This document shows positions 23,356 through 64,000 of a stretch of DNA of 64,000 nucleotides, piece by piece; position 1 is the first letter of the stretch, and each line of letters starts with the position of its first letter. Both the position numbers and the translations under genes were made by a program. Below the pieces are notes generated by a model. That model ran no database searches, was not told the origin of the DNA, and was given only the letters and a program-made list of their open reading frames with translations. The stretch comes from Macrostomum hystrix (Eukaryota > Animalia > Platyhelminthes): the NCBI GenBank assembly GCA_950097015.1, contig CATNEN010000015.1, forward strand, positions 372,001-436,000. Direction: 5' to 3'.

Positions 23356-23660
23356 CAAGCAGGGCAGGTAATCCTTGAAATGGAAATGGATGAGCAGTGA
23401 AAACTCCGCGCGGCAAATGAACTCAGCAAGGTTTTTACGCCTGTGAGCAGTGGTAACTGACGGTAAGCTATCCTGGCGCACCGCTGAAAGGACAAGCAAA
23501 AGGCATAGTTATGGATTTCTGCCACAAGTTGGGGACTTCTTTTGCAGCCGTTGGAGACACAGAAACTCGGCCGGGCAATCAATGTTTCCAGACAGCTAAC
23601 CGATTGCTTCAATTTGCTGCTGCGGGCGCTTCCTTGCTGCCGAGAACTGGCAGGATTATT

Positions 23661-29851: not shown

Positions 29852-30285
29852 CTAAACTTCGGTTTCGTCAACGGGATCTGCCTGGCTGGCCGACGAAGTG
29901 CCAGAACCGGCGCTTCCAATCCTTCGCGTGACGATGCGGTCTCCCTTAGCAACAATTCGGTCAGCTGGCCAGGCCTCCAGCCTCTCTTGCAGATTGAATT
30001 CCTTGGCGGCCTCATGAGTAGACGTGGCTGGTTCTACAGCAGATTCAGCGCTCCAGGCCTCCCGAGACCGCGGAACTTCCGACACCTGCTGAGCCTCAGA
30101 GGCGGGCTGGATCACTCGGGATTTTCTAGAATTCAGGTTTGATCAGGGTCAATGGTTTGTTACACTTTGACAAACTCAATGCACAGTGAAAGTTACCGCA
30201 GGTTTCTCCGCACGAAGATGGTGGCAAGGACGAGGCCGACTAGAGCAAAAGCCACGCCTAAGGAGATGACTGTTGGCATCATCCA
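29852..30285 (-). CDS. Giant protein: transmembrane helix, basic stop-transfer segment and about 95-aa cytoplasmic tail
   Basis: WMMPTVISLGVAFALVGLVLATIFV followed by RRNLR|KSR; the tail ends ...DPVDETEV*. Confidence 0.85.
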
Positions 30286-42200: not shown

Positions 42201-45200
42201 ATCACAAAAATGATTCGTTTGACCCAGCGCTATCGGTAAGCTCGTACGGGTGCAAGTACCAAAGTTCTATATTTCCAAGATTCTATAATCGCCGCCGTCA
42301 CGAAGGCGAGATGACTCCTCCTTCTCTCTCTCGCTGCTTTCTGCCCAGTTGTTCCAGCGTAACTGTCTAGCATTTAGCGAGCACTATTCCACTAGCTGTC
42401 CTTGAACGTGTGAACGAGCTTGGAAACCACCAGAGCAGTGGTCAGAGTAAACGGCAACAGTTAGGAAGAAAAAACAGCAACTGAACAGATGGAACCCCAC
42501 CTAAAAGAGAACCGTGATTTTTAATCAACGAATGTAGCCTACTTTGGAACTGCATTTGCAAATCGAATAAACAAACTAATGACAGCTTTGCGAGAACGTG
42601 ACAAAGAAGAAATATATAGTGGAAGGACCTACTCAAAGCCAACGACCACCCTCAATAGAGTCTTTATTCTTAATAGCGCTTTGCATGCTAGCCAAGGCCG
42701 TCCCCAAAGTACACATAATATTCCATAGGCAGACAGACTGTGCAAAACCACCCACCAGCCTGATTGTCGGGCTTAGTCAAGTCGATCGTGCGCCAAACAA
42801 CGTGGCTCTCCCCGCCAGGTCCGAATCCCACAGCAAGGCGGGTCTCCACGAGTTTGGAGTCATCCGTAGCGATGGCGTACGCAGAGAGTATGCCCGGATT
42901 GCTGGTGCTTCTGAAGTCGGCCTGAACTCGGCCTTGCGGCAGGGTGGTGTCGTATGTCGGCAGATCGCATGTGGCGTAGACAACGTCGCGCTGGCTGTTC
43001 TCGACTCTTATCGTGAAGTACAAGGGGATACTGTGAGGCAGCGGCTGCAACACAAATTACGGATTTGAGGATTATTCGACGCGGCCTCAGGTACAGTGAG
43101 GTAGAAAAACTAAAGCATTTGACGAACAATTACCCACCCTTGAAATGATGGACATTGGTCCCTTGAATTCGCTGTCTCGCACAATGTCATTCATTCCCTT
43201 GGACGAACCGATGCTATACGTCATTCTAATCAAGCCAGAATCGTCTTCCGCATCAAGCTCCAGTCGGAATGCCGGGTCATTCACATCGCGACCGGGCAAC
43301 TGCCACACGTTGCAATGCCTGGTTGATCTTTTCACGAGCGAAAATCCTGCTAATTTTCCTTCCATGTCACTGACCACTAGCGGCTTGTCGTCCTTTTTGC
43401 TTTGATGTCGGTACACAACAACGCTAAAAAGACTGGGTGCGGAAACTCGCCAAATCCTTGCTCGGAAGAGCGTAAACCTAGAAACACATTTTTTCAAGTA
43501 TTCGTGGATAATATACTCTTTTCATAGAAAAAGCTAATTTTCTGGCTTCCATGTCTGACTCATATGAACTTACCAGATAAAGAAAAATTTAATCGATACA
43601 ACACCATCCAACTGAAGGGCGATTGGAACGAGCTCAAGCCGCAGAATATGTTTATGCTGGATGTCCTGCTGTTTAAAATCAATCTCAACGGTATAGGGCA
43701 GGCGCATCTCCAAAAGGTATCCAGTTAATTCGATGCCGCCGCAAATCAAGAAGCAAATGTGGACGCCTGCAAACACCTGTAAGTACGAGTTTTTAAAGAA
43801 TTCGCCAATGAGGATGATCGGTCAAGTTGGATGAGTGGTGGAGCAGTAATACGTACTCTGGTACAAATATCCCCGAACTCGAATAGATGGTGAGACCACA
43901 TAATTTTTAGCGCAGCCGCAGAGAGAAGGGTGTGTGTGTATGTGTTATTCTTATCGAGCAATCGACGATTATGAGGATTAACCGCTAAGGCGCAGTTACA
44001 GTGTGCATTGCCTGATGATGAGGGCACAGTACATTGCCTGACTGAAATATTACTGAACTAATTTAAGGAAGTAAAAACAAATGAGTGTGCATAAAAATTT
44101 GTTAAACCTAGATATATGCCATTGCGCACAGGCTCGTTATCTGACGATGAGAAAATCAGATGCGTATTCGCGTCTACGTAAGTTTCCGTGTGCGTGACAT
44201 TAGGTATCAGCCGAGTGGGAATCATTGCCACACACTGCAGCTGAGGCTGGACATTTTTTATTTAACGCATCAGTCTTCTAGTCCCATACAAAAAGCTCGT
44301 TAGAACAATACAATGACTCACCGCCGGGCCGGCTCGCGGCGTGAGATGAAACGTAACCTTTCTTGAAATGATTAACGCCTCGAAAGTCCCCTCAAGGTTC
44401 AAGGTGCCAGCGAGTCCAACTCGAAACACAATTGGGAAAATTGATCCGAGGATCATGCTGGTGTCGAGGGAGAACAAGACCAGTCGGAACTCCCGCATTT
44501 GAATGGTGCCTTCTACTTTGACGTCGAATGACTTGAAGAACTCTGGATCGAATCCACCCTCGGGTTTGGCGTCAAAAATGTATTCCAGCTGAGGATTTGG
44601 GGAGAATGCTGCTTCATTTGCTGTCACTTATTATCAATCTTTCTAATCTTAAGTTTCTTACCATCTTGTCCAGAAGGGTGGAAAAATCGTTTGTCATTAA
44701 TCCTGTAGAGATACGCCGATTTCCGAACTTGAGGTTAGTCAAAGCTGCCACGTCGAACAGCGTCATGTTACCAAGCAGAAGAGCCAAATCGGTGAGTCCC
44801 TGTTTTGAGAAGCCTTGGCCCATGATGTACGAGCCGCCTTGTAATGCACTTCCTGAGTTTGAAGCCCTTAGCAGTACTTGGCGGATGTGGTCAACGCCTC
44901 TCTTGAAGTTTTCATCCAATGTTGCGCCTCTTGCATCAACTGCTAGGCGCACTGGATTCATCCTCAGCAATGGTCCCCTGCGAATCGAGCCTTCATTACT
45001 TTCGCTTAATTCCTTCTGAACTCTCAATCCGTCCTCGAGTGCCGGCATGCTGACACCAATGGTCGCGGCTTTACTCATTAGCATCTGCTCCATCTGGCGA
45101 TTAACAGCTTCAAAGTCCAAGCTTGACCACTTATGAAGAACATCAGGTTGATTACTCAAATCCCTGAGCATCTCAGTTACTGGATCCATGAGTTCACTCA

Positions 45201-48200
45201 AATCGGATTCATCAAAACCAGCTGCCGGGCTTCTCTTTTGTCTGCCGTGCGGTTCTGAAGCGAATTCTTCGCCCGAGTAAAAGCTTTCAACGAAATTGCT
45301 GGTGCTGTTTACATCCGGACCTGTCCACTTACCATTGAAAATGGTTTGGCATGCGGCTGGAACAGGAACCACCGTCATGTTGATGATCTGGTATTGCAGC
45401 AGATTGTTCGCTGAGTCGGGCAAAGTGAAGTAGAAAATGAGGTCAGTTTGATAGGCCACTATTCTGTCCCCTTTGATAGGCTCCCAAAGTCCAGGAATCG
45501 GAGTTGGCGAGTTTGCTGTTATGGCGCTTAAATACAAGTCCGCCGATATTCTCTCCGTGATGTCAATCCTAAATGATTTGCCATGGTGAAAGCCTGACAA
45601 AGTTGAGTTGAGGACATAGTTTTCATAGCCGAATTTAAATGTATCGTTGCATGGATCCAGCCGAAATACGAAATAGAAGTCTCTCATTGCAACTTCCAAG
45701 TCAAACTCGATGCAACACTTGAGTCCGAGGCAGTCCATATCGAAGGAGCAACTGGCCCCCTCATCCCTCCACAGGACGCTGTCATTGAAGTGCGGGCAGT
45801 AGGGACCGGGAGTCAAAATTACTCGCTCAATGATTCTTGTTTGATTCTCGTAGCAAGTTACGTTCGGACTGATGGTCGTCAAAGTTGAGTTGATCAGCGA
45901 GTTGTTGCACGGAACCTCCACCTCAACTATTACAGTTTCGTTATAGTACTCTCTGAGTGGGTACTCATCAATGGCGCACTTTGTGGAGCGCAGGAGGTCC
46001 GGGGACACCTTCAATCGGTTGATGATCAAGCCGCTCTCCACATCTGCCTGTGACGGGTACAGGTAGGTTCCGTTGGACAAGCACACGGGAAACTCGAAGC
46101 TCATGTCCTTGAGAATGTCGGCTTCCATCTCGCAGCTACCCAGCACAGTGGACTGGTCCGTGCACAATGTGGCTGTGAGGTTCAGCACCACGTGCTTGTT
46201 GTCCGCAGTCCGGGTCATCCTGTAGGATGCTGACATCCAGGGACCGAATCGGAAAGTCCTTTGCTCGTACCAGAGATCCCTCTCAACCAGTTCCTTGGAA
46301 ATGACTTGCCGCTCGAATTGATAGTTGAAGGTCATCGAGCATGGCTCAATAGCCAGCTCGGAGCGAAATGACCAGGTTCCCACAGTCAGGTTGACAGGCA
46401 TGCAGCAGCTCACGCCAACGCAGCCTTCTGTGAACTGGCACTGGACTCCCGGGGACATTAGAGGCATCGTGAGGTGCGGGCAGCTGTGCTGCGGGATGAG
46501 GCTGAAGTCGCAGGGGTAGCTGTACAGCATGGTGAGCACCGTGGCGTTCTCAGCCTCAGTCAGGCCCATGCGGTTCAGCAGCAGGCTGTTTGCTCGGGAG
46601 TAGGTCCCGTTGCTCACGTAGATTTCCTCATCAGGCCACATGAAGCCAATGTCGCTTGAGGCCGCACACAGCGGAATCTTCATCCAAAAGGTGTCAAGTA
46701 TGGTGTACCTGATGATGCTGTCTCCAACGCCGAGAAGCAGGTCCATGGACAGCACGAACTCTTTATAGTCGGGGGCAAGCTGCAACTGGTACTCCAACTG
46801 AACTGCCCTGCCGATTCGCTCAACGTGTTTAGTTTCAAAGTTGTGGCCCAGTAGTGTCTTGTTCATGGACCATCTCTCGAAGCCCACTGACAGCTGTAAG
46901 GTGCAAGGCTCAACGAACAGCCACAGCTTGAAGCTGTGCTGGGTAACTTTGAGATCGATCGTGTAGCAGCACTCCATGCCGGTGCAGGACTTGGTTGGCG
47001 TGCATCGCAGCTGATCTGTGTCCGTTTCATTGCGGTTGTGTTCTCTGCACCAGGACTCCCAGATGGACTTTTGCATGTAATCAACTTCGCACTGTTGCGC
47101 GTACATGCTTTCGAACTGCAGCCCGAGCCGGTTCAGAATCAGAGTGCTCGGAACATTTTTCAGGTCCTCGGGCTTGTCCACCGGTGGCCAGAGTAGTCGG
47201 CCGCCGTCACAGATGGGCAGGTAGAAGAAGGTGGGCCGCAGGATGTCTATCGGCGCTTGGCACGCTTCGCCTTCCTCCAGACACAGGATGTAGCCGGCTG
47301 AGATCAGGGCACCGCTGCCTGAGAAGTGGCTATTCACCTCGTAGAACAGCTTCAGAGACGGGGATACTGCCACCTCGTGCCGAGTGTCTGAGAGGGATGG
47401 CGGGTGGAAGAGACTCGCATGATGTGGGAAAAGTTCTCAAACAGTGACCTAAAATACATACAGGCCTTTTTAGCCAGTCATCTTGCCAAGCTCTTACCGA
47501 ACTCGAGCGTTAAGAACGAAGCGGTGACATGCCATTTCTCGAATGTGATGGAGAACTCAAACTGACAGACATCTACGAAGACGCTGACATGGAATGCTCG
47601 CGACACCACCATGAGATCCGTGTTCTGGCAGCAGACAACTCCGACGCAGCTTGAGTGCAAGACGCACACGGACCTGGGATCCGCGGCCTGCACGTCCACC
47701 TTGTCTTGGAATGGACACTGGGTCTTGTCTGGGATCGTGAGGGAGGAGTTGTAGCACTGGCTGTCCCTGAGAGTCGCAGGTTCCAGCTTCAGCCGGGTAA
47801 CAATCAGGCCGCTCACCGTGTCGATTTGGTTCGGGGAGGGCACTGAAATGCGTCGGTAGGTATGCAGCTGAGTGCTTCAGAAGGCAAAGAATTGGCAAAC
47901 AATCAAGTCCAAAATACCTCCAGGCCAGATCAAAGTTCCGTTGAAGCAGGCGGTAATTGACAGGTGTAGATCTGCCAAAACCGGCACACTGTAGCAGGCG
48001 GTCTTGAGCGGGCACACCAAAAGCTCAAGGTTGAAAACAATGTCCTTCATCTCATTCGCCAGAGTCAGAGTGTAGGCCAGCTTTACATTTTCGCCAATCG
48101 GGTGCTCAGTCTTTCTGCCCCACACAAATCCAAGCAGAGATCGATTGAACGACCACTTCTCAAAGGTGAGTCCAAGCTCATAAGTGCACGGATTAATGTC

Positions 48201-51200
48201 GATTGACGTCTTGAAGGCCGCCTCAGCCACTTTCAGGTTGACGAGCGAGCAGCAATCCAGTCCCGTGCAGATGCCCACAGCTGAGCAGTAGACATCCCGG
48301 GTGTCTGGCGCAGTGACGTGCGGGCACTGGACCGAGGCCTGGCCAAGATCGGACCTCTGACACTCCCTCTCTCTCAGCAGCCGGATGTCAATGCCCAGCT
48401 GAGTTGCCAGGATTCCGCTCAGTCCGCGATCGACATTCGTCCAGTCAAGTCGAGAGCCATCTAAGCACACCGGCACTGGGAAGGTCTGGTCATCGAGGAT
48501 GTTCGCCCCTCGACTGCACTCGCTTCCGTCGCAGTACTCCAGAGCCATGCTGACGATGAAGCTTTGCAGGTGCGGTCCCCTGGCCACCTTGAAGCGAAGG
48601 ATCAGGCGGTCGCCAATCTTTTGCTCCTGCTCTTCATTCCAGCCAGTGAAGTCCATCAGAGTGCCGTTGAGGTACCACTTCTCAAAGCCTACTGAGTAGG
48701 TGTAGGTGCACGGATCGAACTGAATCCACGTGGAGAAGCTTCTGTTGACCAGCTTGAAGTCTACCAGCTGGCAGCATTCAACGCCGAGACAGCCGGGAGC
48801 CAGGCCGCACGTGGTGAAGTCGGGCAGAGCGGGCACATTCGCGTGCGAGCACGTGACGTTCCGGCGTCGAATCTCGTCCACGCTGCACTGCCGATCCGCC
48901 AGGAAGTTCGGAGACACCTTCAGCCGATTCGCAATGAGGCCTTTTGTGGCCTCTTCAACCGACTTTGCGTGTCCTGCCGAGTCCACTGAAATTAGAGTTC
49001 AATGGCTCTTAAACTTCTCAGTGACTCTCATTCACAATGCGCAGGCAACTCACATTCAGGCCACACGAGTCCGGAGCCCCCGCAGGCTGGAATGGGAATG
49101 ACCGCCCCGTCCAGCAGCTTGATGTCGAATGTGCATTGGAAGTCATAGCAGAACTCCACGGACAGTGTAGCCAGCAGTTGGCCGTCTGATGCTCGACCGT
49201 ACTCGAAATTCACTGACAGCGAGTTGCCGATCTTCTCTACGTACCTGCGACCTGGAATGCACGGGATTCAGAACTTTGCACTTTTTGCCAAGAGGACTGA
49301 CACAAGAGAAAACAAGCACAGCGCACCAATGTGATTGAGCAGACTGATGTTGAACCTCCAGTTTTCGAATCCCGTCTCGAACCTCAGACCGCACGGGTCG
49401 ATGGCAAGCCAGACGTGGAACTGCTTCTTGAAGGACAGCATCTGCAGGTCAATGCAGCAGTCCATCTCAAGACAGTCGTCGCTGATTCTGCACTTTGCAC
49501 CCTCTGGCAGCTGGGGCGGCACTGTGAAGTGGGGGCAGTTCCTCCTTGACACTGGAGATGACGTCACTACCGTGCAGTTCTCGGGTCGGAAAACTCCAGG
49601 AGGTATGTTTAGCCTCTTGAGAGCTATTTCAGCAGCGTTGTCCCAGATCTTGCTGCCGTCGACCTTGTCAAAGTCCCCTGGAAAAACCAAGTGCATTATG
49701 TAATATCCTGAAAGCAGTTATATAAGCAGAGAAAAATCTCTGCTGCTTACAGTCGATGGTTCCGTTAGCGTGGCACAGAGGCACCTGCAGCAACTGGTCG
49801 TTGAGAAGGCTGACCACAGTACAGGACTGCCCAGAGTCGCCCAAGCACAGCTCGATTCTCGCAGACAGAACAAAGTTCTTGTCGTCGGCTGACTTGTCCA
49901 GAGTGTAGATCAGACGCACAGCCTTGGCGATCTGCTCCCTCTGCTCAACGCCCCAGACAAAGCTCAGCAGTGTCCGGTTCAGCAGCCAGTTATCGAAGGA
50001 GATGGACAGCACCATCACGCAGGGGTCAACGAAGGCCCGAACCATGAAGGAGCGGCTCACGATGCCGAGGTCCAGACTGGCGCAGCAGTCCACGCCCATG
50101 CAGCCATCGGAGTGCACGCAGCGAAGGCTTTCCAGGCCCCCTGAGCTGCTCTGGATCGGGGGCATGTGGGGACACTTGTCTGGCTGCTCTGGCGCCAGGC
50201 TGCACTGGTTCGGTTTCAGGTATCTGGCCACGATGCCCAGCCGATTAACCAGCAGGCCGCTCACGCTGCGCTCTCCGATGCTCGGCCAGCTGAGGCCGCC
50301 TCCGGAGCTGCAGCCCGGAATGGGCAGCGCGGTGTTCTCCAGGAAGACGCGCTCGCTGCTGCAGCCGCCGTCCTGACAGATGGTCACGCCGAATGTGAAG
50401 ATGAAGTTGTTGAAGTCGGCGCTGCGGTCGAGCATGCTGCGAATCTTCACGTGTCCGAGCTGGTGCTCCGCCGGTCTGCCGAACAACCCGCCGTTTCCGA
50501 TGAGGCTCTGGGTGACGGTCCAGCGCTCGAATCCGAAGGTGTAGACAAACTTGCAGGGGTCAACGGAGACCCAGAAGAGGAAGTTGCGCCTGGCCACACC
50601 CAGGTTGATGTCCATGCAGCATTGGATGCCGGTGCACTGAGCGGTCAGCCGGCAGCGCATTCCCTCAGGCAGGCTGGGGATGATCGTGTGCGGACACGCT
50701 GTCAGGCTCTGCTGAATCTCATCGTCACTCAGGCTGCAAGCCTGCTCTCTGAGGATGCCTTGCTCCAGGTTCAGCCGGGTCAGCACTAAGCCACTGACAC
50801 CTTTGATATCATGGGACACCTGATCGCGCTCTGTAAATGTTTTACTGAAAATAGTTTTGTGTCTTCCTAGATGGTTGGATAGGTTGTCAAGGTATCAAGA
50901 ATTTCTTTATTACCAACTGGCCATGAAAGCGAGCTGTTGCTGAAGCACCGAGGGATCGGCATCAGGTAGTGGTTCAAGAAGTTCGTGTTGGGCAACTCGC
51001 AGTAGCCATCCTTGCAGATGGCCAGCTTGGCAGTCACAATCAGGTTCAGCAGATCCACCGACCGCGTCAAATTGTATCTGAAAAGCGAGACACAAAAGAG
51101 TTTCGTGCATTGTTAAAAAAGCCTTCCATAGATTTCTCAGTTAACCAATCGTATTAATTTAGTATAAAGCTCTAATTCATATACATTGCCTTAAGTCCTT

Positions 51201-54200
51201 TCTCGAAGTTCTACAAAGATTTCATCACCAGGTAATCGCGCACCTGAGCTCAACGGTTGAGCCAGCGATTCTCAGCAGCTTCTCCTGACCCCAGTCGAAG
51301 TGGAAGAGCGATTGGTTGTAGAAAAAGTTCTCGAAACCCAGGTAGAAGGAGTATGTGCACGGATCCACCAGTTGGGTGTAGAAGAAATGCCTCCGGTGCA
51401 CCTTAAAGTCCAGTTCCGTGCAGCACTCGATGCCTAGGCACTGGTCGTGAATCTTGCAGTTGTAAGGCTCTCGGTTCAGACGCAGGGTGACGTCGGCGAA
51501 GGTGCAGTGCGGCGGCCACTTCTTGGCGTAGAGCTCAGGGCGACACTGCGGCTGCTTGAGCAACTGACGCTCCAGCTCGAGTCGGTTCAGCAGCACCCCA
51601 GTGGCTGCGTCAACGGGGTTTTCGATGGCGCCCTCTGGGTTCAGCTTCGGCCATTGAAGGCTCCCGTTCGACAGGCAGAAGGGGATCGGGAGCCGGGCGT
51701 CACTCAGCAAAGGCAAAACTTCTTCACTGCACGTGGCGTGTCCGGCGCAGTTGGCAATGTGCCAGGCGAGCTCCAACTGGCTGTCGTGGTGCTTGTTGAA
51801 CTGCAGGTCGATGGACAGAGCCTTGCCAATCGGGATCTTCAGCCACTGTCCAAAGTTTGAGAAGACTGGCCGAGTGACTGCCCAGTTTTCGAACTGGACG
51901 CTGAACGCCATGGAGCACGGGTCCAGGCGCAGGGAGGTGCTGAAGCTCTTCTCCAGTGTCAGCAGCTTGAGCTTTGCGCAGCAGCGCAGCTCCAAGCAGT
52001 CGTCAGTCAGCTGGCACTGGACGGAGTCGGGCAAGTCGTGTGTCAGCCGGAAGTGCGGGCACCGAGGATTCGCCAGTCGAGAGCCGCCTGTCATGAGGGC
52101 GCAGTCGTCCCGCTTGAGGAAGTCCTTCTCCAGACCGAGCTTCTGCATGAGCATCTCTCTGGCCTTGTCCATCATGTGGTCGCGAATGTCGCTGGCGTTG
52201 AAATCTGGCCAGCTGAGGTTGCCCGCACCGGAGCAGAGTGGCACGGGCAGCCTCGCATCGGTCAGCAGGGCGATGGGGCTCGGCAGGCAACTGCCGTCGA
52301 GGCACAGATCGAATGCAGCGTCCAGGAACAGCGCGCTGTCATCAGGCTTGTGGTCCAGCTTGTACTTCACCAGCAAGTGGTCGCCGATGTGCTCAACTCT
52401 GCTCTCACCCCAGGGATAGTTCAGGATGGAGCGGTTGAGCGCCCAGTTCTCGAAGCCGAAACTCACCTGGTGCTGACAAGGGTCCACGAAGGCCCAGGCC
52501 GAGAAGGAGCGGCTCACGAATCCGAGGTCCAGATCTAGGCAGCACACGAGCCCCATGCAGAGGTGGTGCAGCTGGCAGTTCGCCTGCGGTGGCAGCTGCG
52601 GCTTGTCAAAGTATGGGCAGCTGTCTATAGGCGCGAGGGAGTTGCGGTTGCACTGGAACTGGCGCAGGAACTGCGGAGAGACGCCGAGACGGTTCACCAG
52701 CAGCCCGCTGATCTGCTTGCCTTCGAGATCTGAGACGGGAGTAGGTTGAAGAATGGCACTTATTCGCTGGCAGTTCAATGATGTTTGATTTCAGGATTCA
52801 AAGTACACACCTTTGCTAGGCCAGAAGAGAGTGCCGTTGGCAGCACAGCCGGGAATGGGCACCTCCGCCGCACTGAGCAGCCGCATCTCCGGCAGCCAAT
52901 GGTCGTCAAGCCGGAACTGAACAGAGCCCGAGATCAGGAAGTTCATGAGATCTGGCGTCTTGGACACGGTGTACCTGTGCGATAGTGGCAGAGTATTTGA
53001 GAACAGTGCTCAGGTTTAAGAAGCTTAGTTGACTTCACACCTGTTTAGTAGTGCTTTCTCTTACTTGAGCCGAATGGCCTTCTCAAGCTGCGCCAGTTGC
53101 TCAGTTCCCCACGGGAAGACCGTGAAGGTGGTGTTCCTGTGCCAGTTCTCGAAGCCGAAGTCGATGGTGAAGGTGCACGGATCTACGCGGAACCAGAACT
53201 CGAACGCTCGCTTCACGATCCGGAGGTCGAGGGTGGCGCAGCAGCGAAAGCCGGCGCACTCGGCGGTCTGGCTGCAGGCGATGCTCCCGTCCGGCAGCTC
53301 CGGCGCGCGGAAGTACGGGCATCGGCTGCTCGGCACCATCTCCGCCACCGGGCACTCGGAGGCGCGCAGGAAGTTCGGCGGCACCGACAGGCGCGTGGCC
53401 AGGAGACCGCTCAGGCCGCCCTGCCAGTCGACTGCAATTCAGGGGATGCTGGGGGTTGACTGCCGGCGACCACAGCCCCACTGCGATATTGGCACATTGT
53501 GCCCTCAACTCACCTTGAGGCCAGGACAGCGAGCCATTGGTGTTGCAGAATGGAACTGGCAGCTGGTAGTTTTCAAACAGCTGAACGCTGATGTCGCAGT
53601 CAGAGCCGGAGCAAATGGAAACTTTCATCGAGAGTACAAAGTTGCTGAGGTCGCTCAGCTTATTCAACGTGAACCTGCAATTTCAGAGCATCAAGCAATT
53701 GCACCTGATCATTGGCTACTTGGCGCACCCAGCGCTACTCACTCAAGCTGCAGAGCGCTGCCGATCCTCTCGACGTGCTTCACACCCCATTTGAAGGAAA
53801 GCAGCGAGGTGTTGAAGTGCACCTTCTCGAAGCCAACACTGAAGTCGTAGCTGCACGGATCGATCTTCAGCCAGAGGTGGAAGGCCCGCTGAAGCAGCTT
53901 GAAGTCGGCCAGCGCGCAGCACTCGATGCCCATGCAGCCGGCGGTGAGGCTGCAGTTCATCGAGGGCGGCAGGCTCGGCAGTGTGATCGTGTGCGGGCAG
54001 TCTGGAGAGGTGCGGGCAGGGGTTTTGAAACTGTGTGCTCATTGGCGGCACAATCTTGACACGTATGACCTTGGATGAAGATCTACAACTCACCGTTCTT
54101 GGGCGGCCAGATGTTCATTTCCACGGGCGAGCAGGCGGTGCCTCTCAGGATGTCGGCCGTGACCCCAACTCTGTTCAGGATGATCTTTGTGCCCGCGTCG

Positions 54201-57200
54201 TAAATTGACTTTACCATGTCCTGAGGATCGACTGAAAGGCGATGAAAGCGTTGGAAATGAGAGAAGTTAGGGTGTAACGATGTGAGTTTCTGAGAACAGA
54301 GCTTCAAGGCAGAGCGACTCACACTTGGGCCAGGACAGGGTGTTGTCGGAGCGGCAATAGGGAACCGGGAGAGGCGCGGCGTCGATGAGCCACGCGGTGG
54401 GCATCAAGGACAGGCCATCCAGCTGCGTGCCCACGCCGAAGCTCACGTCCAGCTCGTTACGATTGGTGCGGTCGAATTTGAAGCTGAAAGTTGATGTGTC
54501 ATACCTTGTGACTGCGCTTAACGAATGGTTGCGTCTGACTTTCGAAAATGCAACGGACTTCTTAATGCAAAAGAGTCCGAGGCACCGAGAAGTCGAACCT
54601 TACCTGAAGTCGATGGCCTTGCCGATCGTCTCTGTGTGCATGAGGCCCCACTTGTCGAACAGCGACCGGCTCCAGTTCCAGTTCTCGATGCCCACGCCCA
54701 CGGACAGCTGACACGGGTCGAACTTGGCCCAGGCGTTGTAGCTGTAGCGGAAGTTGCCCAGCTGCAGGCTGAGGCAGCAATCCACCTCCAGACAGGTGTC
54801 CTTGATGCGGCACTTCAGATGCTTTTCGCCATGGAGCCGATCAGAGAGTTTGAACAGCGGACAGTCTGAGGATTTTTTGGTTTGGCATTCGTGAGGTGCA
54901 AAATGCAACCGTTTCTGACGCCTGTGACCGGAGATCCCACATGCTATCTCCGAGACACCGCACCTCTGGAGCTCAGACAAATGATAATCTGGTTATTTGG
55001 AACTGCATGCAGGCCTGATCCCATGAAAAGGCCCTTCAAAACTCTTGGCCAGGACCCATTGCTTTAAGGGGGCAGGCATATTCGAATCGCGAGCAAACTA
55101 AATATCTAGCCTACTCACTCGACTGCTGTCGCGACGAGCTCCTCCAGGTGGATCCGTCTACGGAGCAGTTCTGCAGGCGGAAGAACTTCTTGTCCAGCCC
55201 GATGCGCTGCAGTGTGATCCCCATGGCCGTGTCCTTGATACTCTCACCAATGTCGCTTCCAAGGTTAATGAGGTCTGTGGAGTTCAAATGAAATTTTACT
55301 GTTTACTTAAATTCTAATTATCCCTGAAAAAAGTACTCGAATCAAACCTGAAATTCCGATGGATGCCTCGCGATTGCACACTAGCTGAGGGATCTCGTAT
55401 CCCTGCAGCACAACAAACTCCTGGCTGATGTCCTCCACCTTCAGCGAGATGGTCAGGTCAAACGTGAACACTCGCCTGTTGTTGTCCTTGGAAATCCGGT
55501 ACCTGTGCCGATTAGAAAACGATGCGCCGTCAGGTAATTGATAGAGTCTTAACAGTTATTGCAGAAAATGTCCCTCTTTGACCTACCGCATGACGAGCGC
55601 GTTTCCCAGCCTCTCGGTCTTCCACTGGCCCCAGTCAAACGTGAACAATGGCCTCTCAAACTTCCAGTTCTCCAGTCCCACTGAGAACTTGTAGTCGCAC
55701 GGATCTACGAAGGCCCAGGCCTTGACTGACAGCTGCTTGATCTTGAAATCCATGCTCATGCAGCACTCGATGCCCATGCAGTGCTGGTTGAGGTGGCACT
55801 TCAGCGGGTCCGGGATGTGCTGAGGCAGCGACAGGCCGGGGCAGACTGGAATGTGTGAGATTTCGGGACACTTCATCAGACTGCCATCACCGTTTCGCAT
55901 TGCTAAAAAGCCGAGCGGCAATGAGCAGCGAAAACAACTGCGAACCTTTGGGACTCTCGGGCTGGCAGTTCGAGTGCGTGGCGATGACGCCCTCCAGCCG
56001 CAGGTGCCGCAGGACGGCCTCGATGGCGCTCTCGGTGATGCTGCCGCCGAGCTCCTTCACGAAGTCGCCGATGGAGCCGCCAGGCAGACTGATGGACGCG
56101 TTCGGGTTGCAGATCGGAATCGGAATGGCGAAGTTGTTGAGGAAGGCCACCGGAGTCAAGGTGTCTCCTTCGATCTTCACCTGCAGATCCAGGTCTACGA
56201 AGAACAGCTTCTTCACGGGGTCTTTGTCGATCTTGAAGCTGGAAGCGGAATCAAAGATTTTTAGATTTGAGTTCAAATCAAACAAGCAATTCGCATCGGT
56301 CAACATGGCGTGCTGTCAGACCTCACGAAGATGACCTTGCCGAGGTCGAACGACTCCCTGCGACCCCAGTCGTAGCGGAAAAGAGACTTGCTCAGCGCCA
56401 TCTTCTCGAACCGAATCAGCAGCTTGTAGTCGCAGGGGTCGACGGACACGGCGAGCGCGAACGCCTTGCGGGCGATGAGGATGTTGAGCTCGGCGCAGCA
56501 GCTCAGCATCCGACAGTCAGCTGACAGGTCACAGTAGGTGCCCGGCAAGAAACCCGCCGGGGCGTTCGCCGAGCTCTTGAACAGCGGACAGTCTGGAGAG
56601 CGATTCGGTGTTTGATTCGACAGGAACAGAACATTTTCAATGAAGTCGAAGCAATTAAACAACTTGCCAATATGTGTAAGTACTTAGGCTACACCATCAA
56701 ACATGTGGACATACTCGTAATCTCTTTTTGTGCTGCAGCCCTTACCCGTGTTCTTATGGACGTTTTCTCCGGACATTCTTTTGCTCTCTGCCTCGCCCCA
56801 GTCGGCTAGCCCCACCCGGATTCGAATTTATCGATAAACCCCCCTCATCACGGCATGTACATCTCAACTGCACCCGTGCGCCTTCTTTCGGCCCTTTTGA
56901 GCTGTAAATATGAGTTCACGATCAAGGCTGCCCACACCCCTTGCTCCACGCTGAAACCCTGCTAAAGTTCGCCTGAGTGTCGTGATTTTGACATTTCTGA
57001 GTTGTGAGTATCATAAAATTGCCTCTCTGCTATTCCTTCAGGGCATCGGACGGGCAGCGCTTGACTGGGGACCTGGGGAGCTTCAGCTTCTCTCTGTAGG
57101 TGCATTTACATGTAGGGATCACAAAACTACTCAAATCTACTTGAGAGTTCATATGGATGAGGACTTACGGTTGAAAAAGCCGGTCCTGTTGTCGCAGTGG

Positions 57201-60200
57201 CCCTCGAAGTCGATGAGGTCGCCGATGCCCAGGTGCCTGAGCACGGCCTGGACGGCCTCGTCAGTGATCTTCTGCACGCCAGTCTCAGTCAGGTGCCTGA
57301 TGAAGTCCTTGACCTGGCCGCCACCAGGCAAGCTGATCGAGGCGTTCATGTTGCAGCCCACCTGCGGCACCATGGAGTGTTCGAGCAGCACGAAGTCTGT
57401 GCGAACCGAGTCCACCGTGAGGCTGAGCTTCAGGTCCACGATGAACAGGCGCCGGTCGCTGTCCTTGCGGATCGTGTAGCTGGAAAGCGCGAAATCGAGA
57501 CCATCATTTTTTAGCTCCGATTGAAAATATATTTCAAGCCAAGCAATTGAAGAATGCTGCAGTTAGACATTATACTCGCTGGTGTTCTGCTCACATGATC
57601 TGCAGAGGTGACCCCAGGTTGAACGTCTCGACCTGGCCCCACTGGTAGTAGTAGAGAGTCTGGTTGTAGTACATGTTGTTGAAGCCGATGGAGAACTTGT
57701 ACTCGCAGGGATCCAGCAGCAGAGACAGTTGTGCCGTCGGCTTGTAAACTTTGAAGTCCAGCTCTGCGCAGCAGGTAACTCCCATGCAGAACTCGTTCAT
57801 GTGGCAGCGCACCTGGTTGGGCAGTCTTGGTAGATGGAACACCTTGGGGCAGCCTGTGAAAATTAACCGAAGCTTTCATGAATGAAATTATGAAACTAAA
57901 TGCAACTGCTCTTGGGTAGCGCGCAATGATTCTCATAAAAAAATGAACGAAGCAACGCTCACGGCTATCCCAGCCATTGTTGAATGTGCTCGATGGCAGC
58001 ACGCAAGCTGGGGAATCAAAGAATGCGCGCTGCAGGCCAAACCTTCGCACCACTGCCTCCCATGCCGTCTGCACTGTCGAGTCGGAGGCCTTTTCGCCGA
58101 GCAATTTGGCGAAGTCGCCCAACGAGCCGCCGGGCAGAGCGCCGGTGAAGTTGCTGTGGCAGTAGGGCTGGGGCACCACCGACTCGTTCAGCAGCTGAAC
58201 AGACAACTCGCAGCTGTCGGTGAAGCAGACTGCCAGGCCAAAGTCCAGCTTCAGGAAGTCAGTTCTGACTCTGTCCACCGAGTAGCTGCAAATATATTTC
58301 GCGATTCGATCATATTCTCGATGTCCGGCTTGTGAATGGGACCAAGTGTGCTTGCATTGGACTTTGCCTATGTTTACGGTAAGTAAGCAGAATGGGACTC
58401 ACTCCAGCCGAACTGCCTTATTGCCGATCCACTGCGACTTTTTCTGTCCCCAGTGAGCTTCCAGCAGGGAGGTGTTGAAGTGCAGCCTCCCGATGCCGAT
58501 GGAGCTGATGTAGTCGCAGGTGTCCAACAGAATCCAGGCCTTGGCGTGGTAGTTGAGGAAGCTGAGGTCCAGTTTGCTGGTCTTAAATGCGAAGTCCAGG
58601 CAGCACTCGATGCCGAGGCAGTTGTCCGTCACTCGGCACTGCAGGTTGGACGGCAGCTGCGGCAGCCGCACGTGCGGACAGGCCGTGAAGTTGCTCATCC
58701 GTGCGCATCTGCCCTTCGAAAGGACGTTGGTGAGACCTGTCCTTGCGAGCAGGATCTCCGCGGCCTTGTCCAGCGCGGCCGGGCTGGAGGAGGTTCCGAG
58801 CTCCCGGAGGAAGTCCTCCAGCTTGTAGGTGTTGCCAGGCAGGACTCGGTGCCAGTCGTTGCCGCAGAAGGGCACTGGCACCGGTAGCCGGTTGAGCACG
58901 CTGATGTAGTCCAGGAGGCAGGATGAGGAGCCCGGACAGATGGCCAGCTGGAGGCTGAACAGCGGCGCATCCGGGCTGTCTGGATTCTCTTCGAATCGGT
59001 ACCTGGCGGATTGATTGTTATCAGCAAGCTTTGTTGGATTGATCAGTCACTCAAGAGTCGATTGGCTGGCTTTGTGAAGGCCTGAAGCCAATAAAATTTA
59101 CGCTTTTAACCAAAAAAGTACGACATTGCTTACTTCAGCTTAAGAGCTCCGACATTCTGTGAAAACTCCTGGCCGTAGGGAATCGCGAACAGGATCTTGT
59201 TGAAGGTCAGCGAGTTGAAACCGAAACTAAAGGTCAGCGAGCAGGCGTCAATTTTTGCCCAGCCTGTAATGCGCATGGGACCATGAATTCAGCTATGGGT
59301 TGCGAAAATGTGAAATTTGTGTGCAAAAGCTACACACCTTGCAAGTACTTGGCAATTTCGAATCCCCTGATCGAAGCCTCGAGTCCCATGCAGCACTCGA
59401 ACTTGGTGCAGTTCGGCGACGCCTGGCAGAAGACGCGACTCCTTAGCGCCTCTGGCAGCTGCGGCAGCTCCAGCTGCACTGGCCCGTTGCGGCACTGGCG
59501 GAAGTGCAGCTCTGCTAGCTCGATCAGCTGCGTCTTGTTGTCAGAGTCCACCACCTGAACTCCACGCTTTCGCAGCCCCTCCAGCAGCACTTCGTTCGAC
59601 ACCTTGTCTGGGAGTGAGCATGCCTTGGCGTTGAAGACTTCGGCTAAGTCCCTCAGACCCAGCTGCTGTAGCTGGTCCTCCCACCACTTCTGCATCACGG
59701 CGTTGATGGCTGAATTCGATGTCTTCTGCAGCAAAGACTTCAGGTGCTTCTTGTTCAGAACCTGCTGCCAGTTCAGCATGGGCCAGGTGACGATTCCGTC
59801 CTTGCAGATGGGAATCGGCAGCACGAGCTCCTGCAAGACCTGGATGCCAAAGGGGGTGAGTAGTCAGCGGCTTGTGTCGCTGCCTCACTTTCCAGTGGTC
59901 TCTGGTTTGTTCCTCCCTCCAAGTCATGATTATTTCGGGGCTTAGTTGGAGGATTGCGAAGTAGTGACTTGCGGAGATGCACCTTATTCTGTGCAACCAA
60001 AGCTAATTTAAAATAGCTTAACCCTTGACTTCTGCATGCCTGCTTGTGTGTTTGTGTTTGTGCGTTGGGCAGGGTGTGAGGCGTTGTATGGGGGTGGGGC
60101 GGGTGTGCACCAATGTGTACTCTCGTCACTACCATTCAGGCATCTAAGTCCTCCCCTGGTTTGGTCTGCTCTGTGCGTGTCCGGGCCTGGGGTGAGAGGC

Positions 60201-63200
60201 ACTACGGCTGCCGCCCCCTTCCCCGCTTGGCTTGCTGCTGAGGTGCCTGTGTCCAGGGGTCCAGATGGCGCGATTGGGACTCCCGCCTAGTTCGTCGGCC
60301 TGGGGGCATGCCGTTCCTCTGCCTGTGCGTCAAGTGCCCCAGGTCCCCTGCAAATAATTAAGTAAAGTAAAGACCTGGATGCCAGCGTCGCAGTTGCTGG
60401 TTGACGCGCACATGAAAAGGCGAAGGCTGAACATCACGCTGTCATCCGTCTTCGCGAACTGGTAGGACAGTTTAATCTTTCTTGTCAGAACGTCGAAGAA
60501 GCTCATTTCGTCCGTCAGCCAGATCTCTTTCTCCTCAAAGTCTGAAATATGCTTATGCACTTATTATGACTGTTTTCTGTTTCCTAGATTTGATTTGAAC
60601 AGGTCCTAAGTCGCATACCATTGGCTGAGAAGCTGTCTAGCTCAATCGAGTGCACGAAGCGGTTCATGTCCTTCAGCTTCAGTCCGAACTCCAGCTTCTT
60701 GCTGCTGCCGCACGGATCCAGCCGAGCCCACAGCTTCGCCGCCTTGCGGAACATGTTCACTTTGAGATCCAGGCAGCACTCCATGGATAGGCAGCTCTTG
60801 TCGAACTGACAGTAGATTGGCTTCTGCAGAGACAGTTGCATCAAGGGACAGCCTGGGCAGTACGGTTGGTATTTAGGTTAGTAAGAATGCTGGTGAAAAA
60901 AATGGGCATAGTATGCTGAACAAGATAGACTCACGAGAGTCACTCTGCTTCATGCGGTCAATAAGGCTGGCCTTGGGCATGACGTCCACTTCCTTTTGAT
61001 CGAAGCCCTTTTTAATGAGCTCGTTCCGTAGCTCCTCTTCGGACATCAGGTAGGGACTCTGGCACGGCTGGTCCTCGAGGACATCTTTCACCGACAGCAG
61101 CATCTGGTCGGTCTCATTTCGCGTTGACGCTAATATGTTTCTAACTTCCTCTGACTCAAGAAAAGCAACGACATGGGCCAGCCGCATTCGGCGTAGGTTG
61201 AACTTCTGGAATATCCGGTCCACTCCGAGCCTTTTCGGGAAATTTAGGACGCTGCTAAACTTTCTAAGGACTCTCTCGTTAGTGGTTGGCTGGGCATTGG
61301 AATTCCCAGTGTCCTCTGCAAACAGGTTCTTGTAGTCCGCCATCAGCGGTGCGATTGTTTCCTCTCTGGCCTCCCGCCGTGGGCTGTTATCGAACACCCA
61401 GCCATATCTCGTTAGTCTGGCTGAGAGAACCAGAAATCCCAGAACGTACACTTGGGCATCGCCACAGTAGGGCACCCAGTTGGACAAGGTAATTCCGCGA
61501 GGCTCCAGATACTTGCTGGCATCCAGGTACGTACCCGGGCCGGACCTAGCAGACATGTGGATGTGGTTGATGCACTTGCCCGTGTTGGCCGCAAAGCCCA
61601 GCTGGCCTCCAGAATTCAGCCGCACGCCCTCAGTTGCCTGGTTGTTGCCTCTGGCGAAGTCAAACACGGGCAGCTCGCTTTCTTGAAACCTGCCGTTGTC
61701 CATCAGGAACTTCACATTCTCAAATATGAGGTGAAACCTGTCCAGACTGAAGCCCTTCGGAATCACGACGAGCTGGTTGGGTCGCTCCGGGCCTCGGTAA
61801 TACTCGCCCAGGATGGGCACAACGATTCTCTGTCCCGGGTGGACCTGCAAGTCCACGCCCGGGTGAGACCACAGGCCGTCGCCATTCGCGGGAAAGAAGC
61901 CGTCGGAACCGCAGCCTGATCCGGGCAGGCGATAGGTGCGAGGGAACTGGGGATGCACCCGCGGCCCCAAGATGGACTCCAATATGGTACGGAGTGCGTT
62001 CCACGTCTCAACAAGACCATTGAAGGCCTCTTTTAAACCTCGGATGATTTTCTTCCAGATCTGAATGAGACCCTCGGCGATCCCCATCATGGTTTGAACT
62101 CGGCTCAGCGGTTCGATGAGGCTGCTCTCCACTCCTTGAAGAAGACCCGCAAGCTTTGAGAATTCCTGAAATTAATTAAATTGTTAGCTTGCAAACCTTT
62201 GTTTTAAAGTTCCAACATAATAATCGCCGCTCACAAAGAGCCAGAAGTACCTGGTCAGACACAAAGCCAGATGAGCGGTTTGTCCCAGCCAACACAGCCT
62301 TGGCTCTTCTGTCCAGTCCTGTGCGCATCGCCTCAGTGAACTCCGAATGAAGGCTGTCGCAAAGTTTGCCGATTTCCCACCAGAAGGTCCTGTCTTCTGC
62401 ATGAAAGAGTATAGGAATTGATGAGAGAATGTACAGCATTCAGCCTAGTCTCAAAGTCACAGCGCACTCACCGTTAGTCGTATGGCATGCAGCCTGCGTT
62501 CGATTCTGGCTATCGATGAGGCCCTGGACTGCTGTTCCTATTTGGTGGAAGGCCTTGAATGCATTCAGCATGGACTCTTTGGGCGAGCGATACAGTTTCG
62601 GAAAGATGTTCACTAAGAGATCCAGGCTCTCTTTCAGCTGCTTGCCAGAGACTGGCATCTGGTTGTTTATCGTGTCGAACAGAGTCTAAAACGGTGTGCG
62701 CGAGCGCAAGTGTGATTTCTGGAACTCTGAACAATTCTATGAGCTCTGCTCTAACTTTTTACTCCTTCTCTCACACCAAAATCTCTTCGGTCTGATGTGA
62801 GTCAATTAAATCGGAGTAAGTGCATGCGTGTGTACGAATGCGTGTTGTCGATAGACATACAACAACTACCATGATATTTTGAGATGGTATGCCTAGCAGT
62901 ATGAAATGTTGCAGATCAAGCACCGCAAACATTCCACTCACAATGTAGAAGTCAGTGGCATCCGCCTTGACGGTGCTGGACAGGATGAGAATTCTTCTGA
63001 GCACAGCTAGCGGTGGCTGCAGCTGCTCAGGCAGCTCCTGTGCGTCCAGCTGGGACAGGATGCTCAGCGCGTGGTCCCCTGAGTCGCTCATCTGCGCCAC
63101 AATCTCGGGCACTTTTCCGTTAAACTCGTCACCAAGTCTTTTTATGACAGAGAACAGCTGATCGGGATTCGTTGGCGCAAACAGCTCGCGGAAACCGTCC

Positions 63201-64000
63201 ATGACGGCGTTTATGCCCCGGTAGATGGCACCGATGGTGCGGTCGTAAAGCTTCACAAGTGTTTCAAGGTTGTAAACCCCCAGTTCTTTCAGGAAGTTGG
63301 TTTTGTACTCTACTCGGCCACTGAGGCACGCCTTGCCTACTATAAAAGTCGGATGGAAGTTAATGGCGCCCAGGTGTCCTTGGACAGTAGCCAAACCAAT
63401 GCACTTCACTTCAAAGTGGCCGGCGGACAAAGCTAGAATGAGGCGACAGTTGCTGGGATGAAACTCTGAGGGAGATTTCTAAGTCTTTTATGTGGTGATG
63501 ACTCACAGGTCTTGAGAGTTGCTTCGCTTAATAAATTAGCTCTAATCGTAGCGCCAACTTTATGGTCGCCAAAAAGTTTACTCCACTGGACTTGGGGCAA
63601 GTTCAGCGGCCAGTTGATGCCTTTCCACATCTTCTCCAGAAAATACGGGGCGCTCCGCTTTGACATGAGATGAGCCAGACTGCTGTTGGCGGACATTCTA
63701 CAACGATGAGTCCGGTTGAAACAGCATGCTCAGAGCATGAAATAGCTGCTCGCATTAAAAATATAACTCGTATATATGCAGGGGCTGAGCGCAGCATTTA
63801 GCGACAGTCGACCCACAGCCAGGGTAAATTGATTAAGCATCTGAAATGTCTCCCCGCGAAGCGGGCCTATTTTAGGTCAGAGACCTTTCCGCGAGAGTAC
63901 CGTCGGCTCTAAAAAATACTCTGTGATTTTCAGCGCCTACCCTTTGTTGATTTCACGATTGAGAGCAGCAAAGTCTTTCGTTCTGGCCGGATGTGACTCG
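29852..64000 (-). CDS. Giant multi-exon type I membrane protein, 5' end outside the window; at least 58 exons and about 8,610 aa within the window
   Basis: Hand-spliced GT-AG exons with phases consistent throughout (5'->3'): 64000-63941, 63697-63507, 63432-62942, 62685-62472, 62396-62251, 62165-60935, 60852-60619, 60541-60375, 59839-59338, 59263-59134, 59002-58403, 58285-57963, 57853-57595, 57479-57169, 56592-56322, 56238-55946, 55902-55587, 55502-55348, 55274-55119, 54865-54604, 54483-54323, 54231-54094, 54001-53743, 53674-53514, 53431-53065, 52974-52811, 52729-51244, 51077-50914, 50830-49751, 49677-49327, 49251-49054, 48985-47918, 47842-47498, 47387-44662, 44588-44322, 43776-43574, 43477-43138, 43044-42756, 41656-41504, 41424-40551, 40461-39347, 39255-38920, 38823-37865, 37779-37626, 37519-37210, 37124-36861, 36771-36638, 36543-36007, 35939-35413, 35325-33666, 33496-33288, 33203-32852, 32758-32536, 32433-31940, 31895-31689, 31331-31018, 30858-30197, 30125-29852. 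Repeat and domain motifs run correctly across the junctions. Individual boundaries may be off by a few nt. Confidence 0.88.
30300..30555 (-). CDS. Giant protein: two juxtamembrane EGF-like repeats
   Basis: PCLNNGTC...C...CGCPAGWLGDRCE and DPCALLRCDPPLICSEGSGGSASCICPPGSKCE. Confidence 0.85.
31018..31760 (-). CDS. Giant protein: cadherin-like Ig-fold module
   Basis: Spliced NSAPVIQ...PEDAV|VEFKRQLVATDPEEDPIVWEL...GQASMSADGLLVYRP...LVVTD resembles the cadherin-like NxxP...ED...ATDxDxD signature. Confidence 0.7.
32430..43300 (-). CDS. Giant protein: about 15 FN3/Ig-like beta-sandwich modules, interrupted by a PAN domain and a non-FN3 insert
   Basis: Recurrent motifs D(T/L/N)TPP, V.DG, W.GF.DPES.I..Y.WA(I/V)GT and L..G..YY..V.A.N (e.g. 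IDLTPP, VDNTPP, VDRTPP, FDSTPP, IDDTPP, FDNNPP, IDTTPP). Confidence 0.8.
41320..41656 (-). CDS. Giant protein: PAN/apple-like domain split over a 153-nt exon (41656-41504) and the next exon
   Basis: Spliced ...SQMCAEDCVKQGDKCRAFNYH|FVNRLCELSHEMIGHRSRLSDSYGFAYYER fits the PAN pattern C..C....C..F.Y.....C.L......YY. The small exon is absent from the ORF track. Confidence 0.8.
41760..41802 (-). mobile_element. Second, headless copy of the SINE-like body seen at 21695-21738, inside an intron
   Basis: Reverse complement GTGGCATACCCCAGTCCACGGACTGAACAGCTGTACACAGCCT versus GTGGCGTCCCTCCAGTCCATGGACTGAACAGCCGTACGCAGCCT, 38/44 identical. Confidence 0.65.
45290..60852 (-). CDS. Giant protein: tandem array of 21 cysteine-patterned repeats (about 175-200 aa each)
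   Basis: Consensus L..RL......C...CP...P.LP...C.....C.G(I/V).CC..(L/V)D.....F..W..(V/L)DPC...F..GFE.W..N.(S/T)L..F.WG....E.IG..L.L.Y........F.......C....C.......LP(I/V)P.C..NG.L.WP. The CxxxxCC...(D/N/E)(P/A/T/V)C core was counted 21 times. Confidence 0.9.
59835..60384 (+). mobile_element. Retroposon-like insertion (520-bp core) flanked by a 15-bp target-site duplication; coincides exactly with the intron at 59840-60374
   Basis: AAGACCTGGATGCCA at 59835-59849 and 60370-60384. The plus-strand 3' end has the A-rich repeated tail AAATAATTAAGTAAAGTA. Confidence 0.8.
61490..61930 (-). CDS. Giant protein: LECT2-like M23/LytM zinc-binding domain
   Basis: GCGSDG...HPGVDLQVHPGQRIVVPILG (HxxxD, His at 61863-61865), GQLGFAANTG...NHIH (HxH at 61557-61565) and DASKYL. 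This parallels LECT2 GCG...HQGVD...APFTG...HVH...DPTAYL. Confidence 0.82.
61960..63432 (-). CDS. Giant protein: beta-strand-rich segment followed by long amphipathic-helical (apolipoprotein-like) region
   Basis: Heptad-like hydrophobic periodicity, e.g. LYDRTIGAIYRGINAVMDGFRELF and IAEGLIQIWKKIIRGLKEAFNGLVETWNALRTILESILG. Confidence 0.55.

Follow-up and report, generated by a model that had tools for sequence, protein, structure and literature searches.

The window analysed here, a 64,000-nucleotide stretch of Macrostomum hystrix DNA (contig CATNEN010000015.1, positions 372,001 to 436,000), contains on its minus strand an array of 21 tandem copies of a ten-cysteine domain of ~185 residues. 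This domain has no Pfam name (2025 copy; Pfam 38.1 via the Atlas) and no solved relative, and it belongs to a gene that is expressed and correctly spliced. Members of the family, most of them in long arrays, are found in flatworms, molluscs and nemerteans as well as in hemichordates and amphioxus, which shows its conservation. We suggest, with a probability of about one half, that the array is an extended extracellular stalk or multivalent scaffold that carries a head of the large lipid transfer protein (LLTP) type with an M23-like module.

An old and transcribed array

The window is eukaryotic DNA in which long open frames are broken by short introns, and the gene in question is a minus-strand, intron-containing gene, a point absent from the first-pass annotation of this DNA. 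A seed hidden Markov model (HMM) was built from ten uninterrupted copies and searched against all minus-strand stop-to-stop fragments. It placed 21 tandem copies between 60856 and 45310 (best E 3.6e-70), a refined HMM returned the identical set, and the 21 copies listed by the annotation were thereby borne out. With 60852 as the RNA-supported upper exon end, the array spans 45310..60852, and 21 units of ~188 residues give about 3,950 residues, in keeping with the roughly 4,000 estimated earlier. The nine uninterrupted copies are 10, 11, 13, 14, 16, 17, 19, 20 and 21; the remaining copies are split by introns, mostly at a common domain position (HMM position ~122, or ~110 in copies 15 and 18). 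From the N- to the C-terminal end, the copies are as follows.

Copy 1, 59768..60850, minus strand: exons 60619-60852, 60370-60541 and the start of 59337-59834; spliced RNA contigs; 76.3 bits chained
Copy 2, 58858..59530, minus strand: exons 59337-59834, 59131-59262 and 58403-58999; RNA contigs; 76.5 bits chained
Copy 3, 58144..58770, minus strand: intron 58286-58402; HMM and RNA contigs; 138.5 bits chained
Copy 4, 57323..58059, minus strand: introns 57853-57961 and 57480-57594; HMM and RNA contigs; 137.7 bits chained
Copy 5, 56079..57178, minus strand: introns 56593-57168 and 56239-56321; HMM and RNA contigs; 124.1 bits chained
Copy 6, 55273..56021, minus strand: introns 55846-55945 and 55500-55583; HMM and RNA contigs; 140.8 bits chained
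Copy 7, 54282..55236, minus strand: three coding pieces; exon end 55119 in RNA contigs, lower introns inferred
Copy 8, 53512..54202, minus strand: three coding pieces; core piece E 7.8e-35 (HMM)
Copy 9, 52815..53417, minus strand: intron near HMM position 122; E 1.7e-36 and 1.9e-07
Copy 10, 52155..52718, minus strand: uninterrupted; E 3.6e-70; the copy modelled with AlphaFold
Copy 11, 51600..52178, minus strand: uninterrupted; E 1.2e-65
Copy 12, 50885..51614, minus strand: intron near HMM position 123; HMM mapping
Copy 13, 50259..50807, minus strand: uninterrupted; E 2.6e-66
Copy 14, 49704..50273, minus strand: uninterrupted; E 1.7e-67
Copy 15, 49052..49639, minus strand: intron near HMM position 108; HMM mapping
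Copy 16, 48411..48959, minus strand: uninterrupted; E 1.3e-69
Copy 17, 47886..48434, minus strand: uninterrupted; E 2.4e-62
Copy 18, 47179..47825, minus strand: intron near HMM position 111; HMM mapping
Copy 19, 46588..47163, minus strand: uninterrupted, without the optional C8/C9 pair; HMM and column table
Copy 20, 46009..46599, minus strand: uninterrupted; E 1.4e-61
45967-46041, minus strand: extra degenerate linker before copy 21; HMM mapping and sequence
Copy 21, 45310..45912, minus strand: uninterrupted and most diverged, with a ~20-residue insertion, without C1 and C8; HMM and column table

The copies contain all three features that the annotation had described: its motif string, a strand of the FSVGFEKW type and a linker of the GLLVNRLGV type. 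Matches to the core motif C-x4-CC-x15-40-[DNE][PTA]C number 19 on the minus strand of the window, all within 45649-60793, and the plus strand has none. In the column table of the refined HMM, seven cysteines (C2, C3, C4, C5, C6, C7 and C10) occur in every copy that covers the column; the other three are nearly invariant, with C1 and C8 found in most copies. An N-x-S/T sequon, said to follow the conserved W usually, does exist at this position, and 12 of the 21 copies have it, so that "usually" was generous. Protein identity between the nine full copies is 19-39% (median 25%), and self-BLASTN of the array DNA gives five weak off-diagonal matches of at most 71% over at most 178 nucleotides. Thus, the description of the array as highly diverged in its DNA and old holds.

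Of the words sampled from 45310-52778, 87-88% are present in four sequencing runs of one study. No library type is recorded for these runs, and we take them as RNA because their contigs are spliced and their assembly amounts to about 47 Mb compared to a 220-Mb genome. Contigs placed on 54900-60890, which takes in copies 1-6 and part of copy 7, omit twelve segments that read CT..AC on the plus strand, i.e. GT..AG on the minus strand. These minus-strand GT-AG introns are 55275-55347, 55500-55583, 55846-55945, 56239-56321, 56593-57168, 57480-57594, 57853-57961, 58286-58402, 59000-59130, 59263-59336, 59835-60369 and 60542-60618. The contigs continue past 60852 into an upstream exon, with a loose end that reads ...IDRMKQSDS. 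Chained by a local script, the 13 RNA-supported exons are open for 1,219 codons in one frame, with 23 and 46 stops in the other two, and encode six complete domains and the start of a seventh. Exons were joined only for this local check of frame and domains; queries for databases and folding were single exons or uninterrupted copies.

The 535-nucleotide intron 59835-60369 is removed by splicing in the RNA contigs of all four runs. Fifteen letters at its joint fit either side, consistent with a 15-bp duplication that gave rise to both splice sites, and its interior is found in separate, deeply covered contigs of different sequence, as a repeated element would give.

When their exons are read singly, copies 1 and 2 seem degenerate, and a stop codon at 44614 follows the last big open reading frame (ORF), as might be expected of decaying or non-functional repeat DNA or of a chance pattern. 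However, in the spliced RNA the frame is open and both copies are full domains of ~76 bits each once the RNA-supported exons are chained, seven cysteines are invariant across the 21 copies although the median identity is 25%, six phyla have homologous arrays, and the stop at 44614 sits in a phase-compatible putative intron. The probability of decay or chance is, therefore, practically nil.

Predicted structure, relatives and named families

The repeat is predicted with confidence to be a two-sheet beta domain with a helical linker. Modelled by AlphaFold with the window's own copies as the alignment, copy 10 reaches a predicted local distance difference test score (pLDDT) of 87.8 and a predicted template modelling score (pTM) of 0.79. 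It begins with a short N-terminal helix and a loop that carries C1-C3, continues with nine antiparallel strands and closes with a C-terminal helix, which is the linker of the following copy. In a tandem pair, both domains are again confident (pLDDT 85.4), while pTM falls to 0.60 and residues 161-190 have pLDDT values of 53-69. The lower pTM and the low-confidence residues suggest that the domains would be compact beads on a semi-flexible helical hinge.

Across homologues, the ten cysteine columns are 92-100% conserved in 127 full domain instances, and cysteines are lost in pairs (C3-C5, phi 1.0; C1-C6, phi 0.77; C8-C9, phi 0.77). This pairwise loss suggests five disulfides per domain with the partial connectivity C1-C6, C3-C5 and C8-C9. 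It assigns six cysteines and leaves four invariant ones outside these pairs, so the connectivity is partial only and a cystine knot is not established. Besides the cysteines, the residues G-[FI]-E, W-G and L-P-x-P are conserved across phyla.

The first-pass annotation had proposed that the domain belongs to no recognised family, and the searches support this. Pfam-A gave nothing meaningful for four long ORFs, for 20 copies from the window (E<=10) or for 32 tandem pairs from several phyla (E<=10), nor was there any significant match to an already described Pfam domain at that threshold; a few members have stray sub-threshold matches to Conotoxin_I2, DUF7866, WAP and CX. The vWD, C8, TIL, EGF and other named cysteine-rich Pfam models match none of the long ORFs, window copies or tandem pairs. 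A PDB sequence search with both profiles was empty at E<=1, and the structural comparison that the annotation had proposed, a Foldseek search of the PDB, gave no match at E<=0.001. A cluster labelled 'Nucleocytoviricota' appeared in the language-model feature search, and the viral structures of BFVD hold no match at E<=0.001. By language-model features, the closest clusters are hypothetical mollusc proteins (0.94 and 0.91) without a Pfam 38.1 family. Literature searches on DUF4773, on LLTP with SAP and M23, on Macrostomum with vitellogenin or LECT2, and on the RefSeq LOC names of the homologues returned no description of the family.

Exhaustive HMMER with the repeat profile (A1) against 1.84 billion representatives, i.e. 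the proposed search of sequence databases with an HMM from the copies, found 763 related clusters at E<=1e-3, 237 at 1e-10 and 36 at 1e-30. Because of these 763 clusters, the blanks from word-index protein searches with a two-copy ORF, the DUF4773 ORF of the same genome and the A1 alignment are uninformative, given the length window and word index of those searches. The named homologues that were looked up are from the bivalves Potamilus, Sinanodonta, Mytilus, Mya and Argopecten, the gastropod Babylonia, the nemertean Lineus, the flatworm Macrostomum lignano, the cephalochordate amphioxus and the hemichordate Ptychodera; no vertebrate or ecdysozoan member was seen among the named matches. The related arrays span six phyla with 9-17 recognisable copies per homologue. 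The repeat sequences are already in public databases as hypothetical proteins: the homologues are called 'hypothetical' or 'uncharacterized', save for automatic labels ('Vitellogenin domain-containing', 'SAP domain-containing') and an evident misnomer, 'TDRD9'. The closest database relative of one exon is a protein fragment of M. lignano with 73% identity to the 517-residue ORF of the window. A domain tree (88 columns) is poorly resolved; it hints that copies 1-3 may be positionally orthologous between mussel and amphioxus and that later copies may have expanded within lineages.

Among named families, DUF4773 (PF15998) comes closest in language-model features, with scores of 0.81-0.84 and 174-186 of 256 features in common; scores under 0.9 are leads only. 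Its cluster is also the first row of an ESM-Atlas shape search, at a template modelling (TM) score of 0.40 over 108 aligned residues, tied with unrelated bacterial rows. In both DUF4773 and the repeat, a C...C-x-CC motif precedes beta strands and more cysteines, and the repeat could accordingly be a divergent, multi-copy branch of a DUF4773 superfamily, which would be compatible with a stalk or scaffold. We consider this doubtful. None of the 52 domain sequences (20 window copies and 32 tandem pairs) matches PF15998 at E<=10 (gathering score 27 bits), and profile A1 misses the genome's one true DUF4773 gene at E<=1. The family HMM from 127 instances scores -0.8 bits on that gene, within the shuffle range, and hhalign gives repeat versus DUF4773 a probability of 0.13. 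These profile comparisons are a weak test, as they used one DUF4773 sequence. DUF4773 is, therefore, a resemblance by embedding and shape, not a case of membership. The two are alike in that a C-x-CC motif leads into beta strands and in that DUF4773 proteins are secreted and occur in invertebrates (arthropods and molluscs). They differ in that DUF4773 is a model of 118 positions found typically once per protein of ~150-230 residues, whereas the ~185-residue repeat has a helical linker and occurs 9-21 times in giant proteins. The only mentions of DUF4773 found in papers concern uncharacterised transcripts, from haemocytes of the oyster and pleuropodia of the locust (PMC12064177, PMC6966819). 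The true DUF4773 gene of this genome (52.5 bits against PF15998; contig 14, 1744895-1745251) adjoins a tandem repeat with a period of ~50 nucleotides that reads as a long pseudo-ORF on both strands.

In the M. hystrix genome, all 52 profile matches are confined to the window gene and one inverted paralogue ~350 kb away. This paralogue of the whole gene region lies on the same contig at positions 776001-806000. Compared with window positions 33768-59844, its identity is 97.4% over 12.5 kb of the array and 86-94% in the flanks, a pattern that marks it as a real second copy and not an identical assembly duplicate. It may have been homogenised by gene conversion, and variant RNA contigs at 58527-58628 may derive from it.

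The gene around the array and a possible role of the repeats

By collinearity with homologues, the array would form the middle ~4,000 residues of one protein of roughly 9-10 thousand residues (an estimate). The predicted domain order is a vitellogenin-N-like (LLTP) head, an M23/LECT2-like region, a SAP motif, the array, FN3-like repeats, an EGF-like domain and a transmembrane anchor. The features outside the array, in the same order, are as follows.

62771..64000, minus strand: further upstream exons of the same gene, in collinear alignment with amphioxus homologue residues 629-839; the gene runs ~9 kb past the window end
60873..62132, minus strand: upstream exon of the same gene, which contains an M23/LECT2-like region and a SAP-like motif and is joined by splicing to the exon that ends at 60852; blastp against amphioxus P0155 964-1339
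45232..45243, minus strand: RQKR dibasic motif, 22 residues after the last copy; a possible, inferred furin-type processing site
44589..44661, minus strand: putative 73-nucleotide phase-0 GT-AG intron; sequence and collinearity with P0151 3413-3484, then 3514-3614
30196..44588, minus strand: downstream exons, probably of the same gene, with FN3-like repeats, an EGF-like domain, a transmembrane helix and a short tail; collinear blastp, weak fn3 and EGF Pfam matches

The homologues P0155 (amphioxus) and P0003 (mussel) contain, from the N- to the C-terminus, Vitellogenin_N with HEAT_2, a weak M23 match, SAP and the repeats. Vitellogenin_N (PF01347) scores 44.3 bits in P0155 and 34 bits in P0003 (cut-off 24). 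By tblastn, the window gene is collinear with residues 70-1339 of P0155/P0003 from ~9 kb beyond the window down to 60894, the point at which the repeats begin. The SAP-like motif of the upstream exon reads as helix-extended-helix (...EELRNELIKKGF...LIDRMKQ), and SAP is significant in the amphioxus and mussel homologues, where the M23 match is weak. For a protein that appears to be extracellular, such a motif is unusual.

On the C-terminal side, the putative intron 44589-44661 would remove the apparent stop at 44614 and join the array exon to the downstream exons. Between 44.6 and 30.2 kb, the exons match in collinear order the C-terminal halves of Sinanodonta P0151 (3413-6663), amphioxus P0002 (2976-5182) and Ptychodera P0120 (487-2047), and in the gene models of all three this region comes after copies of the repeat domain. 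A hydrophobic helix and a short basic tail lie at the C-terminal end (ORF 30193-30747). Between 30196 and 44588, there are about a dozen diverged repeats of ~110 residues (D-x-T-P-P ... W-x-x-F-x-D-x-E-S-G-I) with weak fn3 matches. These have no relative in a PDB sequence search and perhaps represent another little-described type of repeat within the giant gene.

In the model that we favour, the array would serve outside the cell as a long stalk or multivalent scaffold of glycosylated beads stabilised by disulfides, with the repeats as structural or interaction modules and not as lipid-holding sheets. The stalk would keep the lipid-transfer-type head, together with the M23-like module, at a distance from the membrane; alternatively, cleavage at RQKR would release both into the matrix or a body fluid. 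An extracellular location fits because of the disulfides, the sequons, the FN3-like, EGF and transmembrane context and a copy number conserved in the tens. Several points weigh against this model. The stalk or scaffold role is drawn from architecture, and a binding site, instead of a purely structural core, could account for the conserved G-[FI]-E, W-G and L-P-x-P. A six-frame search of the genome with Pfam Vitellogenin_N gave no match on this contig, so the head is assigned from tblastn collinearity with homologues. Finally, the junction between the array and the FN3-like and transmembrane part is taken from predicted gene models of other species, which may be fusions.

The first-pass annotation had read the strands as a hint of a lipid- or ligand-binding sheet. 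In such a scheme, the repeats would be modules for lipids or other hydrophobic ligands, i.e. amphipathic beta repeats that extend the lipid capacity of a vitellogenin-N-type head in the manner of the beta regions of apolipoprotein B and apolipophorin. The LLTP-type head of the homologues, the hydrophobic/polar alternation in the strands, weak structural matches to lipocalins, CRBP II, FABP and EPDR1, and a bacterial 'lipoprotein family' cluster at TM 0.40 all fit this scheme. However, hydrophobic alternation is a requirement of any two-sheet beta core, the lipocalin and CRBP matches are at noise level and cover half a domain, and no closed or clam-shell barrel of the lipocalin, FABP or EPDR1 type spanning the whole domain was found. 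The hint thus finds no specific support, and we regard a lipid-binding role as quite unlikely.

Alternatively, the array could be a multivalent recognition or adhesion device for a glycan, a microbial surface or a matrix partner, as part of a pattern-recognition, clotting, mucus or adhesive molecule. Such a role would suit the non-cysteine residues that different phyla have in common (G-[FI]-E, W-G and L-P-x-P), the many copies, which favour avidity, and the M23/LECT2-like module in the same protein; relatives among the LLTPs include clotting and immune proteins. By contrast, the Pfam scans gave no lectin-like or other binding-family match, and the conserved residues may be simply structural. 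We consider this role unlikely. The proteins with which Macrostomum adheres consist of vWD, C8, TIL and TSP-1 domains (PMC8621496) and are distinct from the protein described here.

Elsewhere in the window, a single-exon ORF of 788 residues (12387-14750, minus strand) codes for an amiloride-sensitive sodium channel (DEG/ENaC; Pfam ASC, E 3.7e-25) whose N terminus is extended by a long stretch rich in Gly and Ser. Large strand-skewed minisatellite and satellite blocks (1-12000 and 15700-25600), whose periods show up as repetitive pseudo-ORFs and whose GC skew reaches +/-0.6, occupy much of the sequence around this ORF and below the 3' end of the giant gene.

Significance and comparison with known systems

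The repeat would add to the domain catalogue a unit of ~185 residues with ten cysteines, a confident AlphaFold model and hundreds of instances in six phyla, and would give a first annotation to thousands of 'hypothetical' residues in mollusc, amphioxus, hemichordate, nemertean and flatworm genomes. The unusual predicted architecture, with a membrane-anchored giant protein headed by an LLTP-type domain, raises the interest of the domain and bears on the diversification of vitellogenin- and apolipoprotein-type proteins. We speculate that the repeat is a new fold-level family that, together with the M23-like and SAP parts, defines an undescribed branch of membrane-anchored giant LLTPs. This branch would stem from the bilaterian ancestor and survive in lophotrochozoans and invertebrate deuterostomes, with DUF4773 proteins maybe as single-domain offshoots; we give this proposal less than even odds. 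Macrostomum is a laboratory model with RNA interference and in situ methods, and because of these methods and the M. lignano relative with 73% identity, the function is directly testable.

Among known systems, the LLTPs (vitellogenin, apolipophorin, apoB and MTP) are similar in that the homologues have an N-terminal Vitellogenin_N domain above the Pfam cut-off and the window gene is collinear with them, and the RQKR motif is reminiscent of the way in which furin processes LLTPs of insects. As far as is known, LLTPs are secreted or reside in the lumen of the endoplasmic reticulum, and they continue with DUF1943, vWD or amphipathic beta regions. By contrast, the window gene would go on with M23-like, SAP, 21-copy cysteine array, FN3-like, EGF and membrane-anchor parts, and the repeat itself matches no LLTP domain. 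We know of no described LLTP design with a lipid-transfer-type head on a membrane-anchored ectodomain of ~10,000 residues. At the level of the fold, the N-terminal domain of FAIM (PDB 3mx7) and its C-terminal domain (2kw1) are among the closest known folds, though not at E<=0.001 in Foldseek. Tandem disulfide-bonded extracellular modules are of a familiar kind, and the array is similar to vWD-C8-TIL proteins (mucins, zonadhesin and FCGBP) and to EGF, sushi and CUB proteins in that many tandem, disulfide-bonded and glycosylated modules would build a long extracellular molecule. However, the repeat differs from all of these in that it matches none of their Pfam models and has a distinct cysteine spacing in a ~185-residue, beta-rich unit with a helical linker.

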